From the NCBI GenBank assembly GCA_013265495.1, contig MU062935.1, positions 2,294,001 to 2,358,000 on the forward strand: DNA of 64,000 bases. The letters run 5' to 3'. The position numbers were made by a program, and so were the translations under genes. Numbering within the stretch: the first letter of the stretch is position 1; every line of letters begins with the position of its first letter. Below the pieces are notes generated by a model that had not been told where the DNA came from, searched no databases, and was given only the letters and a program-made list of their open reading frames with translations. The stretch comes from Vicugna vicugna (Eukaryota). Of the stretch, positions 440 to 64,000 are shown piece after piece.

Positions 440-52687
<52,248 letters not shown>

Positions 52688-54145: not shown

Positions 54146-57100
54146 TGAGCTCCCTGGGTGTTCTTGGATGGTGCCCTTTCTGAATAAATGGTTTGAGTCT
54201 CTGACCAGCTCTCCCAAACCCTGGCCAAAAAGACGCAGGTTAAGCAACTTGCCTTGACAGGGAGCCTTGCTTCCTTTTATGGGGGGACGTCCTGCTTCTC
54301 CACGGGCCTCTGTGGGAGTTTATCCAGAAAGGAATGGCCTGAGAGTAGGGGGTGCAGATCCCAACACAACCTCCCAGAGAGGTTTGCTGGGGTTTGTCCT
54401 GGATAAGGGTCCCAAATATGAAACGCACCTAGGGGAAGGATGTGGTTTTAAAAAGGGAGAGAGAGAAAGCCTTTTTCTTGATGACCTGGGAAACCCTCAT
54501 TTTAGGGAATTCATTCAGGTAAGAAGCTGTGACACCTGTCATTCTACTGCCTTTGGACAGCAGGGTTTGGATTTCGTGGTGCCGCCCCCCCAACCCCACT
54601 CCTCTCCTCCCATCAGTTCCTCGCCATCTGCTTCTCCTTTTCGCTCAGAGAGCTGCTTGCCGCATCCTTAGGACACACCTAGCCCCTTGCCACCTCCTAC
54701 CCTCGACACTTACTCAGGTGCTGCAGTGACATTTGCAGTCCCAAAGCTCACTTGGGGCAGACCCTGGGTCCCCGCCTTTTGTCCCGAGTGGGAGCTTTAC
54801 CTCCCAAGTTATCCCACTGTGGGAGCAGGAGCATAGAAGCAAGGGGACCCAGGAGCTCCCCACCCCTAGGCAAGCCCCTGGCAGTCGCCATGGTGATAGG
54901 GAGTCCCTGTTGGCCCCCCAGCCCTGCACTGGAGGTGAGGGGTGAAGGGAAAGGCAGGGAAGGAAGACACTTCTAGGTCCTTTTGTCTATTTCTTCCTGA
55001 TACCCAGCTGTTGATCAGGATGCAGTTTGTGTATCTCTGAGAGGTGGGAAGAAGATGGGAGGGAAGGAGGTTTCTGTGGGCCTGTGCTGTGAATGACTTT
55101 CTGGACCACAGGAGGTCCATGGGCTCTGGGGAGTGCAGGCTCTGTCCAGTGGATGGTCTGGAGAGGCCACAGAGGCTGTGTTTGCCCACAGAGGAGCACA
55201 GGGGCCCAGCCATTGGTTTCTATACCTTGTTGAAGCCTGGCTGGTTTCTAGGGAGGCAGCATCTGTAAATTAACAGCTGGACTTGGGCATCAGGTATGCT
55301 AGGGCTTAAGCTGGCTTAGCCTCTCACTGGCTGGTCTCCAGAAGGTTGCTTTGCCTCTCAGAGCGTGTGGCGGTGAGCCTGAGGATCAGATGAAATCCCG
55401 CTGGGAGCTGTCAGCGTCTTGGCCGCTGCTGTCTCTGCCAGAGGTGACATGCCTCCTAGACAGGCTGCTTGGTAGTACCTGAGGCTGCACCTCGGAGTTC
55501 CCTGCTGCTTATGTCAAAGACATCGCAGGGTGAAATCTGTGAATCTCTCTGCTGGTCAGTGGCTGGAACCACAGGGCAACTCTTACTTGTTCCTATGGGA
55601 ACTGACTATTGTTTGTTGCAAACACCTTGAAAACTTTTAAACTTGACCCTGGACAGGCCAGGTGCCAAGTCCTTTCTGACTTTCACTGGTTGACTTTGCC
55701 CCTTTCCAACCAAGAGCTGGCTGGACCATCACCCTTTGGTGGCCAATGGAGATTAGGCAGACAGCAGCTGCCCTGCAGAGATCTCCAACCCAGAGGAGGC
55801 CTGCCCCCTTCCAGCCTCTTCCTGGTTGAATTTCTCTCTGCACCCAGGGAAGCACTCATCAGCAATGCTGCCAAGAAGGAAACATTTTATTAACATGTCT
55901 CTTTGTTTCCAGTGCACTTATAAACACGTGGGCCCTTGACCACATGTCTAGTCTTAAGACTTCAAAGGGTCCTTGAAAGCTACATTTTAATGAGTTTGAT
56001 GTAAAATGAGTCTGGCGCATAGGGATTTAATTTTCATTTAAAATTGCACAGACTTAAAATTAGCAGAATTAAAGGTTAATGGCAAAATGAATGCTCAACT
56101 TTTGTCAACCCCTCAAATTTGTATTTTAAATAGGGAGCAAAATCGTTAATTTGAGTGCCCTTTGGCCTTAGTGTTTGCCAAAGGAATGGAATCTTTCCAA
56201 GTCTCCATCAACTTGTGGGGTGGAAGGAGCTTTTATAATCAGAGTATTTCACTAATGAAAACTCTTTTTTCCCAGAAACACATCTTGTTTAGCTAATTTC
56301 CTTTTTCTCTTCACAATAGCAAATCATAACTCCAAGAGGGAATGAAAATGTCACATCGCTCAAGGCAAGCCTAAACCCAATTTTTCCCCCCTCTGGCTTT
56401 GTCCTCAGGATGCTGCCCAAACACATGGTGGGAGGAATCCTTCTAAACAAAGGGATCCTTTTTGCTTTGTGATAAGGCTTTTGTCTGGGCCCCTGAGCCT
56501 ACAGGGGACCAGCTCATGTGCAAGGAATTTAGGGTGGCCCACCCCACACCCCTTCTCTCTTCCTCAAGAGTTCTCCAAAGCAGGCAGGCAGGAGATGGGG
56601 GATTTACGAGCCTGATGTTTGGCTCGCCTCCAAGGGCGTTTTCGTATTTGGGGTGTGCTTATCTCCCCAGGACAAAGCTCGGGGATGAAAGAACCTGCAA
56701 AGCCTTTTATTGCCCATGTTACTCCCTCTGCCCTGACCACCGCCCTCCCTGGCACCAGGATGCCTCTCCCTGTCGGCATGGGCATTCTCAGGGCAAAGCT
56801 GAAGCTGAACACTGCTGGGATGATCTCAGAGGAGAGTGATGTCTTGGCAGAGGCACCAAGCCCTAGAAATGCCAGCTTCAGGCCCAGTTGGTACAGGACA
56901 ACAACCTTAATGTGTGAGAAATGCTTAGAAAGCAGCAGGTCAGATGCTGCAGGTTCAAGTCTGGATTCCAATCCCAGCTCTGCTACTCCCCAGCTCAAAC
57001 ACTTCAGGCTTCTCTGTGCCTCAGTGCCTTTATCCATAAAATAGGAAGATCATAGGAAACATCCATCCCAAGAGTAACCTCTAGAATGGTCCCACAACCC

Positions 57101-57254
57101 ATCCATCCCTTGATTGGCCTCGGCAGGCCCTCCTGACCCAGAGCTGCTGGGAGAGGGGCTGCCTGAAAATTGGCAAGATTCAGCAACCCAAGGCACAGTG
57201 GAAGGGGTGCCTCAGTGAGGGAAAGGGTGGTTTGTGGGGAAGACATTTAGCGAA

Positions 57255-57480
57255 GTGGTTATTAGCACAGGCTAGTAAGTTCAAATCCTGGTCCTTTCTT
57301 GACCTCAGGCAGATCGCTTACCCTCACTAAAAACAATGCCTCCATTTTTTTTCTCCCATGAAACAGGGTAATGGGATCTACCCCATAGAGTGTTGTGGAG
57401 TTAACTGACAAAAATGCACGTAAAGAATATCACTGTATCCACTCCGTGGTAAGGTTCACAAAATTACTATTAGTCATGCA
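57255..57480 (+). mobile_element. MIR SINE
   Basis: gttcaaatcctggtcc...gacctcaggcagatcgcttaccctc. Confidence 0.7.
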
Positions 57481-59174
57481 AGGAGCCTAAAATGATTCTT
57501 TGGCTCTGAGAGCTTAAATCCAGAGGGGCTACTTTAAAGACAGATAAGCACTAAGTCTTAGGAGAGGCCCTTATGGACAGAGCCCAAGGCTGGAGATTAA
57601 GGTTGGACCGCATCCTTGGGAGTGGGTAGGGTGGGTCCTGGTAGCCTGGGGCATGGCGGGAAAGGTGGGAGGGGAGCCAGGTGAGTCAGATGCACCTGTG
57701 TCCCTGCTCACACCCCCCCCCCAGCCTCCCCTGGCTTTTAAGAAGCAGTTGACCCCTTTTCCCTTAGCACAGGCCTGCCGCCTGCCCCACACCTTCCCAG
57801 AGGTTATTGGTGGCTTTTAAATGAGTTTTTAATTCTAGAGTAAGAAAAATTGCAAATAACAATGCCAGGCACTGACTCAGGATTATCCCCAGTTTTTCAC
57901 AGAGTTTGCCAGGGCTCAGAGTGAGTGAGTGATGATCAAGATCATGTTAAAACCCAGAAAGTCTGAATTAAAAAACCTGGGGCCTTGAACAGGGTCAGAA
58001 GGCTGTGTGCAGCTCACAGGGGCCTGGCACAGGATGTTTCCCACAAACACAGAAACTGAATCTGAAGGCGGTTCTCCTTGTGGGCTATTGGCTGTTCTGG
58101 GACCCACTGGAAGGCAGCACTTTGAGGGCACTTCCCTGCACCCTCCCACTCCCCTCCCCTTCTGGCGGAGCCTGTCCACTTGCAGGTCCGGTTGTCCGCC
58201 AGAGGTCGCCTTGGACACAGGAACTGCAGGGCACCGAGGGCAGCCCAGTGGTCTGTCAGGAACACAAGGGGTCTCCGAAGCCCTGAGGAAGGGGACACCC
58301 ACTTGTTCCCTCTCCTGCTCCAGACACCTGGACTTACCAGTCTGGGGGAGGGGACAGTCTCGACCCAGGAGCTTTCTTGAGTTCTGGCATCAAACCCTGC
58401 TCCATGACCATTTGACCCCAGGGTCCAGCCCCCTAACTTTTCTTCCTCCATCCTTCCCTCACCCCACCCCTTAGCAACAGAGCCAGTGTGTAGTGTTCAT
58501 GGTTCAGTCAAAATCAAAAGACACTTCCTCCAGGAAGACTTCCTGGACCATTCTCCTAATTCCTTGCCTGCCCCTCTGTCCAGTTTTCTGAACTGAGAAA
58601 CCTTCAGGGCAGGAAGCCTATACCCTTAGTGCCTGGCACAGGGTCAACAGCAAGTGAATGTTGAATGAATAAAGGAGAGCACACCCAGCAGAGGGTGTGA
58701 AGATCCAGGAGGCTGACTATTGGTGCTGCTGAGGTGACCGGTGGGTCCTCCTCTGCCTCACCCTGCCTGTGCCTTTCTCATGATGCTTGTCAACATTCTG
58801 TCAGAGTTTTTTGTCTGAAACACAGATGCGGGGTTTGGGGTCAGTCCCGTGCAACCATCTAATATTGCTGAGCTTCAGTTTTCTCATCTGAAAAACTGAC
58901 ATAAGACAGAGTCTATTAGTAAGCCACTGGGAGGACTGAGTGAGGTCACTCGGTACAGCCCCCAGCCCAGGGCCTGGCACAGAGTAGGCACCACCACACA
59001 CAGTAGTGTGCCCTGGGGCAGGCACAGCACTTCTCCCACCCCCACTTCCCCACCTGGAAAGGAGGTGGTGAGAGCCCCAGTGACGGAGGAGGGATGCTTA
59101 AGGCATACGGAGCACAGCTTGGCAGCTGGTACCTGGCAGGTGCTTTTTAATCGTCAGCTGACATTTTGGATAGC

Positions 59175-59370
59175 TTCCTCTGAGCCAGGCACTGTCCCCA
59201 GTGGTTATACACTGTCCTGTCATTCTCGACATTGGGGTAGTTCCCATGATTATCTCACTGTACAGATGAGGCCATGCAGTGGCAGAGTGTGTCTGAGGAA
59301 CTCGGCCCCAGCCAAGTGTCCAGAGCTTGCTAGGGGTTGAGACTGGGCCTCTCTTTGGACCCCCTTGGGT
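59175..59370 (-). mobile_element. MIR SINE
   Basis: ctcactgtacagatgaggccatgcagtggcagag...gccaagtgtccagagc. Confidence 0.6.
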
Positions 59371-59633
59371 GTCTGGCACTTAGTAGGTGTACACTGGGGT
59401 TTGCTGAATGGAATAGAGACTGTGGAACCCCACGTGCCACCTGGTACCCTCTGGGTATAGTGGGGGAGGCCTGGGCCCTCTAGGGCAGAAAATAGCCCTC
59501 TGCCAGTCACCCTGGGTAGTGTCGCCTTTGCTCCCTTTTCTGGCCTGGTCTGTCACACTGCCTGTAGGTGGCCCCCAGTCCCTTGAGCAGCCCAGCCCCT
59601 CCTCTCCTGTAGGGCCTTGGCAATACAGACCTC

Positions 59634-59658
59634 ATTGGCTGCACGTATCCTTGGAAAC
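59634..59658 (+). promoter_or_regulatory. CCAAT box (reverse) plus RFX X-box-like site upstream of the SPMIP1-like ORF
   Basis: ATTGG at 59634-59638; GTATCCTTGGAAAC at 59645-59658 resembles the palindromic GTTGCCATGGNAAC; about 70 nt upstream of the ATG. Confidence 0.5.
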
Positions 59659-59728
59659 AAGGCACCAGCAGTGCAAACACAGGCTGCAGAATGTTTCCTC
59701 CCTCCCCCACCCTCTCTCCCCCACCGCC

Positions 59729-60233
59729 ATGAGGCATCTGTTCACCTCCCAGAACCAAGCCTGCTGGCAGGAACACATACAGAAGGAGGTCGCCGCCAGG
59801 GTTGCCTGGAACATCAACTATGGCCACAAGCTCCCAAAGGAGGGGCCCATGCCCAGGAAGCGGCTCCAGAGGGCCCCCTTCAGGTCAGCCTTGGGAGTGG
59901 GGCCATCACCAGCCACTAGCTCCCCTGACAGCAAGCTGGAGACCAGGGAGGTCCAGGATCGGCTGTCCAGGGGAGTGGGTGTCCAGGGCCCTCGGCCCAA
60001 GGGAGACCGAGTTTGGGAGGCCCAAAGAGCAACTCGAGGGTCAACAGGCCAGACCAAGCCAGAGGGCTTAGCAATGAGGCAGGTCCCCCCGAGCACCCTG
60101 CAGCTGCTCTTCCAAGGCATCTCCCACGATGGCCAAGGCCGGGCCTTATACCTCCAGGAGCGGCATCAGCAGAAGCCAGAGGAGAAGTTTCTGTACGCGA
60201 TCCTGTCATCCTGGGAGTACGGCTGCCATGTGG
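59729..60233 (+). CDS. SPMIP1/ATP6V1FNB-like microtubule inner protein, coding exon 1
   Basis: Kozak ccaccgccATGa, open for 168 codons + 1 nt, donor GTGG|gtaagg. Motifs QACWQEHIQKEVAARVAWNINYG and MRQVPPSTLQLLFQGISHDGQGRALYLQERHQQKPEEKFLYAILSSWEYGCHVG match recalled human SPMIP1. Confidence 0.85.
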
Positions 60234-61029
60234 GTAAGGGCCACCACCCTCTTGCCATTCCAGGGTTTCTCAGGCAGGCCCAGCCTCATCCCTTATCCAC
60301 TCACTCACCAGCACATCCCTCTGGCTCACTGTTTTCTGAGCAGGACTTCCAGGCCTTTGCATATTCTGGTTTCTCCACCTAGAATGCTCCTCCTGCCCCT
60401 CCCTCTGCTAACTTTCATGTCACCTCCTCTGGGAAGTCTTCCAAGAGTCCTCCAGGCAGATTAGTTGAGCCCATCTTTCTGTTTCTGCAACAAGCACTGG
60501 TCCCATTGCGTCACCATTTCTTGAGTATCCATCTGGCCTGGTGAGCCCTTGGGGTTCCTTAGGACTTCTTAGTTAACTGTATTTATAACCTCCAAGCTCC
60601 CAGCTTAGGGCTGGCACTCGACGACTGTGGAATAAATGAATATGAACTAGGGAGTGAGGCCTTGATTTGGAGTCAGAAAGTGTGATTTCAAATCCTGTCC
60701 CCACCACTTCCAAGTGGTGTGAGCTCGAACAAGAACCTTATCTTCTCCAGGCCTGTTTCCTCATTTGAAAAATGGGAATAAATTAGTCCCTCCATTTGTA
60801 TGTCAGAGTTTTTGAGGAAAAAGCACTCTGAACAGGACTATCCTCACAAAGCCCCATGAGGTGGGTAGGACACACATTCATTCATTCAACCTGTTGTCCT
60901 GTCATTCAGAACAGCCAGCTGAGGGAGATCTGGAATCACTGAATCCCAGCTCTGCCCCAAAGTGATTTAGTGAATGAACAGGCACAGAGAGTGACTCAGT
61001 TTGAAATTATGAGGCTGGGTTTGAATTCT

Positions 61030-61175
61030 GGTTCATTCATTCATTTAATGAGTGTTTATTGAGCACGTGATGTGTGTCAGGCTCTTTTTGTTCCGAGATG
61101 GACAACAGGAAACAAGACAGACATGGCTCCTCAGAGTGGGCTGACAACACACACGGATATATGATACAGTGTCAG
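61030..61175 (-). mobile_element. L2 3' end
   Basis: ttcattcattcatttaatgagtgtttattgagcac...agacagacatggctcc. Confidence 0.7.
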
Positions 61176-61189
61176 GCAGTGGTCTGTGC

Positions 61190-61360
61190 TACCCAGCTGC
61201 ACTTTTCAAATCTTCACTGTCACAGGAGCCACCTGGTGATCTTGTTAAACTGTAGGTTCTGATCCAGCAGTGGGGTTAGGGATGGGGCGAGATTCTGCAC
61301 TTCTAACAAGTTCCCTGATGACACTGCTGCTGCTAGCCCATGGGCCACACTTGACGGTCA
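61190..61360 (+). mobile_element. MER5A-like MITE
   Basis: gatcttgttaaactgtaggttctgatccagcagtgggg...ttctgcacttctaacaagttccc. Confidence 0.8.
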
Positions 61361-61759
61361 AAGCTATAGAAAGACATTAGGAGGAAGTGGAGACTAGGGG
61401 GCTGCTATGGGGAGGCCTGCTGGGGAGCTGATTCTGGATGCCCCCTGGGTACTAGGGCAGTCTGGGTTCGGGGCCCAGACAGGGAGACTGTTTTCTTCCA
61501 TAGTGGTTCTGCTGAGCCCTCAGTTGCTCCCAGAAGCTCTGGAACATTCTGTAACCCTCTGGCCTCATGCCCCTAAACCAGCCAGTTCAGAGGCCAGATG
61601 GGGAACACATGACAGACCTGCTGACCACTTGTCCCCCTTCCCCAACAGTTTCAGACAGGAGCTGCGTCATCCCAGTGGGTGCAAACAGCCATGGGAAGAG
61701 GGATTGAAGGCACTGTCTGGGCCCCAGCTGGGTCAGCTCCAGATGCCTTTTATACATAG

Positions 61760-61891
61760 NNNNNNNNNNNNNNNNNNNNNNNNNNNNNNNNNNNNNNNNN
61801 NNNNNNNNNNNNNNNNNNNNNNNNNNNNNNNNNNNNNNNNNNNNNNNNNNNNNNNNNNNNNNNNNNNNNNNNNNNNNNNNNNNNNNNNNNN
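61760..61891. other. Assembly gap (132 N) in the intron of the SPMIP1-like gene
   Basis: Run of N. Confidence 0.99.
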
Positions 61892-62322
61892 AGTTCAGCC
61901 CTGGACAGGACCCTGGTGGTGCTGACTGTGGAGCACTGGGATGGGCGGGGTGTCACTAGACAAAGGGAGAAATGTGATGAGCGGTGGGCTTGGGGTAAGA
62001 AAGAGGTCAAAGTAGTTAACAATTAGAATGACCTGAGTGCCACCCATCCAGGCAGATCCTGGTCATGGAGCCAAAGCAGGGTGTCGAGGTTCCCAGATGT
62101 ACCCTTTAACTATTGGATCCTAGGAAGGAAGGGGAGGCCTGAGGTAGGGGTCAAGGCATCCAAGGGGCAGCGCTGTTCCTAACTGCATAGAAACATCACT
62201 GTTTGAACAACTGGGGCAGCTGTGGCAGTGATTGCCTGTTTGACCCTCAGCCCTTTGGGTTGGGGTCAGGATGGCAGGAGGAGGGGTGGCCCCAGCTCAC
62301 CTGGGCCCTTGTTGTGTTCCAG

Positions 62323-62441
62323 GCGACACCATGAAGGACACCAGGGCTCCAACTCACGCCCGGTCCCAACCCATCACAAAGACCTTTTACATCAAAAGTA
62401 GTGTCTTCAACTTTCCAGGGCGAACAGACCAGCTAATGTGA
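62323..62441 (+). CDS. SPMIP1/ATP6V1FNB-like protein, coding exon 2 to stop
   Basis: cttgttgtgttccag|GC GAC ACC... completes the phase-1 Gly codon: GDTMKDTRAPTHARSQPITKTFYIKSSVFNFPGRTDQLM*. Total 207 aa. Confidence 0.78.
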
Positions 62442-62934
62442 ACCCATTGGGGGTTTGGAAGCTGCTGCTTCCTTCTCCCAGGGCCCATCTGGACCCTGCA
62501 GAGCAGAGACATTGCCAACCCCACCCACCTATCCTCCCTCTCTCCATCCCTGCCTCCTCTGCCAGGAAAAAATGGGCACGAGTGCTACTGTGGGTGGGGT
62601 GCACCTCTGGGACTTGGGGGGCCCACCTGTTGCCTCTTGTCTGCCCTCACGGGGCTCAGCCCCTTGCAGGGCTCCCCACCCACACCATCACCAGCAGTGC
62701 TGCTCTCCTGAGGGAAACCATGGAACCTCCAAGTGCTCTAGCTGCAGGCTGGGAGCAGAGGAGGGGCTCATTAAGTCCGTCAGGTGCTCAGGGGACAGGG
62801 GTCCTCTCCCTGTCCTTACTCTCTACACTCTGTTGAAGGACTTACAGCAGAACTACTTGGTCCCAGTATCCCACAGTTCAGGACAGAAGTTGTTCCATGT
62901 TTTCTTTCCGTTTCTCTCATCCCCAAGAACATGC

Positions 62935-63310
62935 ATGGGTCAGTGTTGCCTCACTGCTATAACAAACAGCCCTGAAATTCCAGTTGCTTAAACTTATTTA
63001 AAAAATAAAGATGTATCTCTTACAGCACAGTGCAATCTGATGTCGGGTGGGCCACCTGCTGCAGGCTGGTCTTGGGATCCAGGCTTCTCCCATCTGGTGG
63101 CTCTACCATCTCCTAGGGCCTCAGAGTTGTTCCCTGAATCTTCTACCCACAACTGGGGGATGAGGGAGGAGACAGAGCCTGGAGAGAACATGCCCACCTT
63201 GACCACCTTGGCCAGGATTTGGCAAATGTCACTTCCTGTCACATTCTGCTGGTGAGAACGAGTCACATGACTTGTAGATGTGAGAAGTCTGGGAGTGCTG
63301 TGTGACCGGG
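62935..63310. mobile_element. MLT1 (MaLR) LTR
   Basis: tgctataacaaacagccctgaaattccagttgcttaa...ccatctggtggctct...tcacattctgctggtgagaac. Confidence 0.7.
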
Positions 63311-63434
63311 TGGCCAGGAAGAAGAGGAGAAAAGATCCTCAAACATTTAGCCCATCTCTGCTGTGGAGCCCGATGTGTCCTGTGGCTGCTCTTGGGTGGA
63401 TTTGAGCTCAGCCACCACCCTAAACTCACAAGTC

Positions 63435-63900
63435 CCTTCCTGTATGAGTTTAGGAATGCCATAACAAAGGACCACAAACTGGGTGACTTAAAACAACAGT
63501 AATTTGTCTCACAGTTCTGAAAATTAGAAGTCTAAAAATCATGCTTCCTCTGAAATCTGCAGGGGAAACTTCCTGGCTTCTTCCTGGTTCCTGAGGGTTT
63601 GCTGGCAATCCTCAGCCTCCACTGATTTGCAGCTGCAAAACTCAGTCTCTGCCTGGGTCATCACATGGTGTTCTCCCTGTGTCTCTGTCTTCAGATTNNN
63701 NNNNNNNNNNNNNNNNNNNNNNNNNNNNNNNNNNNNNNNNNNNNNNNNNNNNNNNNNNNNNNNNNNNNNNNNNNNNNNNNNNNNNNNNNNNNNNNNNNNN
63801 NNNNNNNNNNNNNNNNNNNNNNNNNNNNNNNNNNNNNNNNNNNNNNTTTTTTGATGGGACACATCCAATGCATAACACCTGCCTTCTGATAGCTAAACTT
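63435..63900. mobile_element. MLT1/MST (MaLR) LTR interrupted by an assembly gap (63698-63846)
   Basis: gtatgagtttaggaatgccataacaaaggaccacaaactgggtgacttaaaacaacag...ctcacagttctg. Confidence 0.8.
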
Positions 63901-64000
63901 TAGTTATTGGTGTCATCTTAATGCACCTTCCTCCTTTCCTTGGGATGAGTCCCCTACTGGAATCCTAGACATGTCAGATGTCCCTACCTGGCAGTCTACC

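Follow-up and report, generated by a model that had tools for sequence, protein, structure and literature searches.

An open-framed orthologue in Vicugna vicugna of the unnamed FLNB-linked sister gene of SPMIP1, with an otherwise invariant tryptophan replaced

The stretch of the Vicugna vicugna genome analysed here, hereafter the window, comprises 64,000 nucleotides (assembly GCA_013265495.1, contig MU062935.1, positions 2,294,001 to 2,358,000 of the forward strand) and is numbered from its first letter. Most of it is occupied by filamin repeats of FLNB, which run from 404 to 52684 on the forward strand; downstream, on the same strand, lies a two-exon gene for a protein of 207 residues that belongs to the SPMIP1 family (Table 1). 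Its reading frame is open, and it is orthologous to an unnamed vertebrate gene of considerable age that is linked to FLNB and sister to SPMIP1. The position of DNASE1L3, the next gene in related genomes, would fall beyond the end of the window.

Table 1. Features of the FLNB-linked gene and its surroundings in the Vicugna window
Feature	Position	Strand	Details
End of FLNB (last filamin repeat)	52520-52687	+	stop 52685-52687; 7.0 kb before the ATG of the gene
Upstream open reading frame, 13 codons	59691-59732	+	TGA overlaps main ATG (ATGA); read from the sequence
Coding exon 1	59729-60233	+	505 nt; residues 1-168 and first base of codon 169
Codon 157, GCG (Ala; family Pro)	60197-60199	+	common to the Vicugna copy and its close relative
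Codon 166, TGC (Cys; family Trp)	60224-60226	+	close relative has TGG
Phase-1 intron	60234-62322	+	2089 nt as written, including an N gap
N run, 132 nt, intronic	61760-61891	.	donor 1.5 kb before it, acceptor 431 nt after it
Coding exon 2	62323-62441	+	119 nt; residues 169-207 and TGA (62439-62441)
Candidate poly(A) signal	63004-63009	+	sole AATAAA/ATTAAA between the stop codon and the window end

The start codon at 59729, the donor after 60233, the acceptor AG at 62321-62322 and the resulting 207-residue product had been proposed in the initial annotation, and re-reading of the sequence bears them out, with the exons joined in phase 1. The start codon (59729-59731) stands in the context CCGCC-ATG-A, with G at -3. 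The donor (TGG/GTAAGG, the slash marking the splice site; GT at 60234-60235) is identical in five orthologues, and the acceptor (CCCTTGTTGTGTTCCAG/G) follows a pyrimidine-rich tract (...TTGTGTTCCAG/G). Exon 1 encodes a conserved N-terminal segment (residues 1-35), a variable linker (36-115) and most of a C-terminal module, including the motif S160-S-W-E-Y-G165, and the product ends in the tail G-R-T-D-Q-L-M. As had also been pointed out, the list of open reading frames (ORFs) misses the true C-terminus, the plain ORF running through the donor to 60382. The upstream ORF would be relevant only if transcription starts further upstream; in a close relative of the Vicugna sequence (P0001), its ATG is in frame with the main ORF and gives a 12-residue N-terminal extension. 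The 132-N gap is wholly intronic, so that the reading frame across it is immaterial. On either side of it, the sequence aligns in unchanged order and orientation with the orthologous intron of Acinonyx, Mustela, Capra and Molossus, where 114-144 nt correspond to the gap, and a hidden exon is unlikely because the orthologous gene models in these four genera have two coding exons only.

Both exons match the Pfam family PF22589 (SPMIP1), exon 1 at 1.6e-24 (87 bits against a curated gathering cut-off of 32.1) over profile positions 27-91 and exon 2 at 5e-4 over positions 94-122. The two matches adjoin, and the profile therefore crosses the proposed splice junction with almost no loss; the family search that the initial annotation had put forward as a check thus returned a significant match for either exon. 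Among chains of solved structures, a phmmer search with exon 1 recovered a chain named ATP6V1FNB from sea urchin sperm doublets (8snb; 1.7e-12, end to end), bovine SPMIP1 (8otz; 1e-10) and a chain named SPMIP1 in 9v10, with a weak match to FAP90 (0.045). The SPMIP1 motifs cited in the initial annotation agree with the alignment to the bovine protein (8otz_A). The N-terminal block Q-x-x-W-x-E-x-I-x-K-E ... R-x-x-W ... Y-G is present, and the stretch from residue 2 to residue 35 aligns with the same-numbered residues of the sea urchin chain (8snb_1i) and also with the bovine and 9v10 chains. Towards the C-terminus, a module of the form G-x-G-R ... Y-L ... P-E-x-K contains S160-S-W-E-Y-G165, a version of the SNYG motif, which is defined as [ST]-N-x-x-[ILVY]-G followed by a helix (PMC10973386). 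Here S replaces N, as it does in other FLNB-linked and many invertebrate members of the family; the Trp expected directly after Y-G is Cys166 in the Vicugna copy. A search of 5.8 billion proteins yielded 56 full-length relatives at 49-77% identity from carnivores, bats, ruminants, horse, lemur, sloth, tenrec, squirrels and many rodents, the closest named orthologues (72-77%) being those of horse, fruit bats and mouse lemur. The gene is thus a new, uncharacterised member of the SPMIP1 family and not a new kind of protein. A profile of the FLNB-linked mammalian proteins matches invertebrate members at about 1e-30, better than mammalian SPMIP1 proper (2.8e-19), and the motif S-S-W-E-Y-G-W of the FLNB-linked copy is common to many invertebrates.

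Gene order distinguishes the gene from SPMIP1 itself. In stoat (Mustela), cheetah (Acinonyx), ibex (Capra) and mouse lemur (Microcebus), a Filamin gene (2633-2641 residues) is followed by the gene and then, on the opposite strand, by an Exo_endo_phos gene of the DNASE1L3 type, in keeping with the syntenic FLNB-DNASE1L3 interval that the initial annotation had proposed to search across mammals. The same order is found in spotted gar (Lepisosteus); in zebra shark the gene is followed by the Exo_endo_phos nuclease, and in the free-tailed bat (Molossus) it follows Filamin (2619 residues), with no further gene listed within the flank. The end of FLNB and the gene are 7.0-8.8 kb apart in the five orthologous loci, with which the Vicugna region is collinear. 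By contrast, SPMIP1 proper follows ATP6V1F: the order is Filamin (2721 residues, FLNC-type), ATP-synt_F (ATP6V1F) and the gene in a mammal (P0155), and ATP6V1F and the gene in sturgeon.

The same division appears in a maximum-likelihood tree of 66 family members, with support from the Shimodaira-Hasegawa-like approximate likelihood-ratio test (SH-aLRT). The FLNB-linked proteins of a shark, ray-finned fishes, a caecilian, crocodilians, a monitor lizard and mammals form one clade (SH-aLRT 99), within which the mammals, including the Vicugna copy, are grouped with a support of 100, whereas SPMIP1 proper from sturgeon, coelacanth, frogs, axolotl, alligator and a mammal forms a separate clade. Both kinds of gene occur in Alligator, albeit found in two different species. 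Many database names would have it that the gene is simply the orthologue of SPMIP1 (ATP6V1FNB), and NCBI indeed calls many of the proteins at 49-77% identity 'protein ATP6V1FNB' or 'protein SPMIP1'. However, the proteins so named sit between FLNB and DNASE1L3, and identity to a mammalian SPMIP1 proper is limited to stretches of 50 residues (50%) and 35 residues (40%). Synteny and the tree rule this identity out, and we regard it as exceedingly improbable. The initial reading of the locus as an SPMIP1-family paralogue downstream of FLNB is accordingly upheld by the Pfam matches of both exons, the phmmer matches to solved doublet chains, synteny and the tree.

A phase-1 intron at the same codon, with two coding exons, was found in all eight loci modelled, namely, those of Mustela, Acinonyx, Capra, Microcebus, Molossus, Crocodylus and Lepisosteus plus SPMIP1 proper; exon 2 measures 119 nt in six of the seven FLNB-linked loci, from gar to mammals, and 125 nt in Acinonyx. 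Given this shared structure and the location of each copy 3' of a filamin paralogue, the two genes presumably arose through a segmental or whole-genome duplication, which would predate the split of bony fishes. To judge from the sequences, the FLNB-linked copy looks the less derived of the two SPMIP1-type genes.

Proteins of the SPMIP1 type are extended chains that fold only on tubulin. In the B-tubule of the sperm doublet, sea urchin SPMIP1 is modelled on protofilaments B07-B10, repeating every 48 nm, and only its residues 2-35 and 104-187 are ordered (PMC11834534, Table 1); the contacts of the SNYG-type module at the inner wall are with both alpha- and beta-tubulin (PMC10973386). In the phmmer alignment, the ordered stretches of the sea urchin protein map to the conserved blocks 1-35 and about 113-207 of the Vicugna protein. 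Homology predicts that the product would act as a microtubule inner protein on the luminal side of the B-tubule, in the axonemal doublets of sperm flagella or motile cilia. Residues 1-35 and the SNYG-type module (116-207) would lie on tubulin and anchor both ends, and the fast-evolving linker (36-115) would stay disordered as a loose middle. The role in the B-tubule lumen and the axonemal location of the product are what we infer from the family, and the gene would be expected to be expressed in testis or ciliated cells. Taken jointly, the identity of the gene and this family-level mechanism appear well founded, and we hold them with considerable confidence; that judgement does not extend to function in Vicugna, where the chances that the copy still works as a normal inner protein are roughly even.

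The gene is under long-term purifying selection. For the whole gene, the ratio of nonsynonymous to synonymous substitution rates (dN/dS), which had been suggested as a check on the initial annotation, is 0.36-0.43 between the Vicugna copy and five orthologues, and 0.36-0.62 among the latter. Pairwise values in mammals are 0.18-0.60 for the module (residues 116-207) and 0.45-1.28 for the linker (36-115), which is variable in length and evolves almost neutrally; pairs that include the Vicugna copy are not elevated. Furthermore, in the protein tree the branches of horse and mouse lemur are at least as long as that of Vicugna (0.13). With dN/dS not raised and a branch of ordinary length, it follows that the lineage has kept the gene over the long term.

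Several observations nevertheless weigh against the reading of the Vicugna gene as one that encodes a working inner protein. To begin with, RNA-labelled sequencing runs (X1-X14; about 0.4-1 gigabase, mostly 'reproductive system metagenome') contain words of the intron (shares of 0.15-0.38) as well as of exon 1 (0.32-0.45), the exon being slightly richer. The exon-1 share is what a species about 3% diverged from the Vicugna sequence would give if exon 1 were fully covered, and in such word shares unspliced RNA or DNA carry-over is indistinguishable from mRNA, so that they neither prove nor exclude splicing. The proteins of relatives derived from Logan all read through the donor into the intron; the corresponding contigs are unspliced or genomic and hence carry no evidence on splicing. 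One could propose that the frame is a chance one, located in FLNB read-through or intergenic transcription and devoid of a coding role in any species, in line with the intron content of these runs and with a 4.2-kb contig of a relative that extends without a break from 2.1 kb upstream, across exon 1 and on into the intron. At the family level, this proposal is ruled out by the 87-bit Pfam match, by orthologues that range from shark to mammals, share the intron phase and mostly have a 119-nt exon 2, and by the dN/dS of the module, which is well below 1; its probability is negligible. Nor do the solved doublet structures include a chain of this paralogue, the matches being only to SPMIP1 proper, the sea urchin protein and FAP90.

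Substitutions at conserved positions count more directly against a working Vicugna copy. The Trp after Y-G is present in all 163 family proteins with an anchored motif, from invertebrates to mammals, but is Cys166 in Vicugna; Pro157 is found in 157 of the 163, the single Ala among them being that of the close relative, and is Ala in Vicugna. The contig of this relative (L001) is 96.9% identical to the Vicugna sequence over the main 3.5-kb blastn match, with a substitution divergence of about 2.4%; the relative keeps Trp166 (TGG), shares Ala157 and additionally carries R138Q, A139D and P150L. At 28 alignment columns, at least 32 of the 33 intact FLNB-linked proteins, which range from shark to mammals, have the same residue; Vicugna departs from it at two of these columns (P157A and W166C) and the relative at three (R138Q, P150L and P157A). 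At 24 invariant codons of exon 1, the two sequences differ by 3 nonsynonymous changes, compared with 1.33 expected under neutrality and 0.13 expected at a dN/dS (omega) of 0.1 (P = 4e-4). Exon 1 has diverged from that of the relative by 2.4%, and the flanks and intron by 2.3-2.4%. Together, these sequence comparisons suggest that constraint was relaxed recently in the small clade of Vicugna and its close relative. W166C may affect function; alternatively, it may be private to this animal, polymorphic in the species or an error of the assembly.

Outside this clade as well, the gene looks dispensable in several lineages, which adds to the case against it. These readings rest on predicted proteins, with +1 frames judged by eye against the alternative-frame ORFs of the Vicugna window. 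The initial annotation had supposed that the gene might be lost or unannotated in humans, and the data fit: in the 90% identity cluster that contains the human LOC124909485 and LOC105377650 (P0059), the representative has no Met at the orthologous start position and carries the replacements R24Q, R138H and Y141D. Judging from these predicted proteins, humans appear to be without a working copy. The model of a tamarin (Saguinus, P0070) replaces 8 of the 24 fixed columns that it covers, and that of pangolin (Manis; P0062, P0067) 6 of 28, including G165S and W166R. A switch to the +1 frame partway through exon 1 is seen in bowhead whale (Balaena mysticetus, P0071), in two elephant seal species (Mirounga; P0060, P0048, P0020), in bovid-like contigs (P0026, P0028) and in P0166, for instance ...RERHR followed by RSRRSFCTRS. 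This pattern suggests that frameshifts arose independently in a baleen whale, in elephant seals and in a bovid.

Such decay elsewhere (in the human-containing cluster, tamarin, pangolin, bowhead whale, elephant seals and a bovid-like contig), the changes at fixed codons and the equal divergence of exon 1 and its surroundings are what would be seen if the gene were an early-stage pseudogene in Vicugna and its close relatives, its frame open only because too little time has passed since constraint was lost. Against this stand the intact frame, start codon, both splice sites and three invariant exon-2 residues, a protein-tree branch of ordinary length, and an exon 1 dN/dS of 0.15-0.30 relative to the close relative, although the latter derives from only 12 differences. 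Moreover, only one of the three recent changes lies on the Vicugna branch and two lie on that of the relative, which weakens the case for relaxation in Vicugna itself, and W166C may, as mentioned, be a polymorphism or an error. On balance, we consider an incipient pseudogene a serious contender whose probability falls a little short of even. The description of the gene as intact, given in the initial annotation, thus holds for the reading frame but not necessarily for function, in view of the replaced Trp.

As to the surroundings of the coding sequence, an intron block left of the gap (61422-61759) matches cheetah and ibex at 80-81% and stoat and bat at 72-73%, the long alignments that span the coding exon being at 71-73%; the block may be a conserved non-coding element. 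An Rfam search of 57000-64000 gave no match. There are three N runs in the window, at 2368-2499 (132 nt), 61760-61891 (132 nt) and 63698-63846 (149 nt). Across the 64 kb, no young families of short interspersed elements were detectable among those looked for, which included Alu, PRE-1 and Can-SINE, only MIR-like fragments (88-167, 51680-51759 and 35889-35967), and the repeat searches otherwise gave the self-similarity of the filamin repeats.

The initial annotation had called the gene poorly annotated. This does not hold for its prediction, given that pipelines predict it in dozens of mammals, but it does for the names, which are borrowed or placeholders: ATP6V1FNB, SPMIP1, LOC numbers, Gm45521 and, once, 'filamin-B isoform 4' (Sigmodon). 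Rodent models are named Gm45521 or 'predicted gene 45521', and UniProt uses 'SPMIP1 C-terminal domain-containing protein'. The names ATP6V1FNB or SPMIP1 are given to the FLNB-linked gene from gar and sharks to mammals, so that in public annotation the symbol SPMIP1 covers two different genes, and in many genomes automatic naming attaches 'SPMIP1/ATP6V1FNB' to the wrong one. A literature search on the FLNB-linked sister gene found no paper; 'SPMIP1' was matched three times in papers on pig, each time as the beginning of the name SPMIP10 or SPMIP11.

Microtubule inner proteins of the sperm tail are being catalogued from cryo-electron microscopy maps and are linked to male infertility. SPMIP1 gene lists and knock-out designs may therefore overlook a possible back-up copy in mouse and livestock, and, with humans seemingly lacking a working copy, results from mouse may not carry over. 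Points of interest are the age of the gene, a sequence that looks ancestral, a location that mirrors that of SPMIP1, the apparent decay in humans and several other lineages, and the replacement of an invariant Trp in Vicugna; repeated loss, together with recent damage to invariant residues, amounts to a natural test of the dispensability of one luminal protein. A more encompassing, and decidedly tentative, scenario, which we put further below even than the pseudogene, is that vertebrates have two SPMIP1-type inner proteins of the B-tubule, of which the FLNB-linked one, the more ancestral-looking, would have been kept from sharks to most mammals, repeatedly lost (in anthropoids including humans, pangolin, a baleen whale and elephant seals) and would now be relaxing in the Vicugna clade. 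If this is true, humans are without an axonemal inner protein that mouse and many other mammals possess, and the FLNB-linked protein may explain unassigned density or species differences in sperm doublets.

The closest characterised system is SPMIP1 (ATP6V1FNB) itself, as seen in 8OTZ, 9V10 and 8SNB. The gene described here resembles it in matching the same Pfam family, PF22589, above the cut-off; in the layout of the protein, with a helix-like N-terminal block, a disordered linker and a module of the form G-x-G-R-x-x-Y-L ... P-E-x-K-[FY] ... S-x-x-x-Y-G-W; and in gene structure and setting, the coding sequence being split into two exons by a phase-1 intron at the same codon and the gene lying 3' of a filamin gene, in the same orientation. 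The two differ in locus (FLNC-ATP6V1F for SPMIP1, FLNB to DNASE1L3 here), their clades have been apart since before the bony-fish split, and their identity of about 40-50% is confined to the two conserved blocks. Unlike SPMIP1, the FLNB-linked gene ends in ...RTDQLM, and S-S-W-E-Y-G, which resembles the invertebrate form, is retained in the Vicugna copy, the corresponding motif of mammalian SPMIP1 being T-T-N-F-x-Y-G. With the FLNB-DNASE1L3 orthologues of the Gm45521 type, the Vicugna copy shares position, strand, exon structure and clade, at 49-77% full-length identity, but it differs from them in a 6-residue deletion in the linker and in the replacement of P157 and the invariant W166. More distant parallels are PIERCE1/2, CFAP90/FAP90, CFAP144 and SPMIP11, which likewise have a short tubulin-binding motif, [ST]-N-x-x-[ILVY]-G, with a helix (PMC10973386), but which show no family-level match beyond the motif, belong to other Pfam families and occupy other sites in the doublet.

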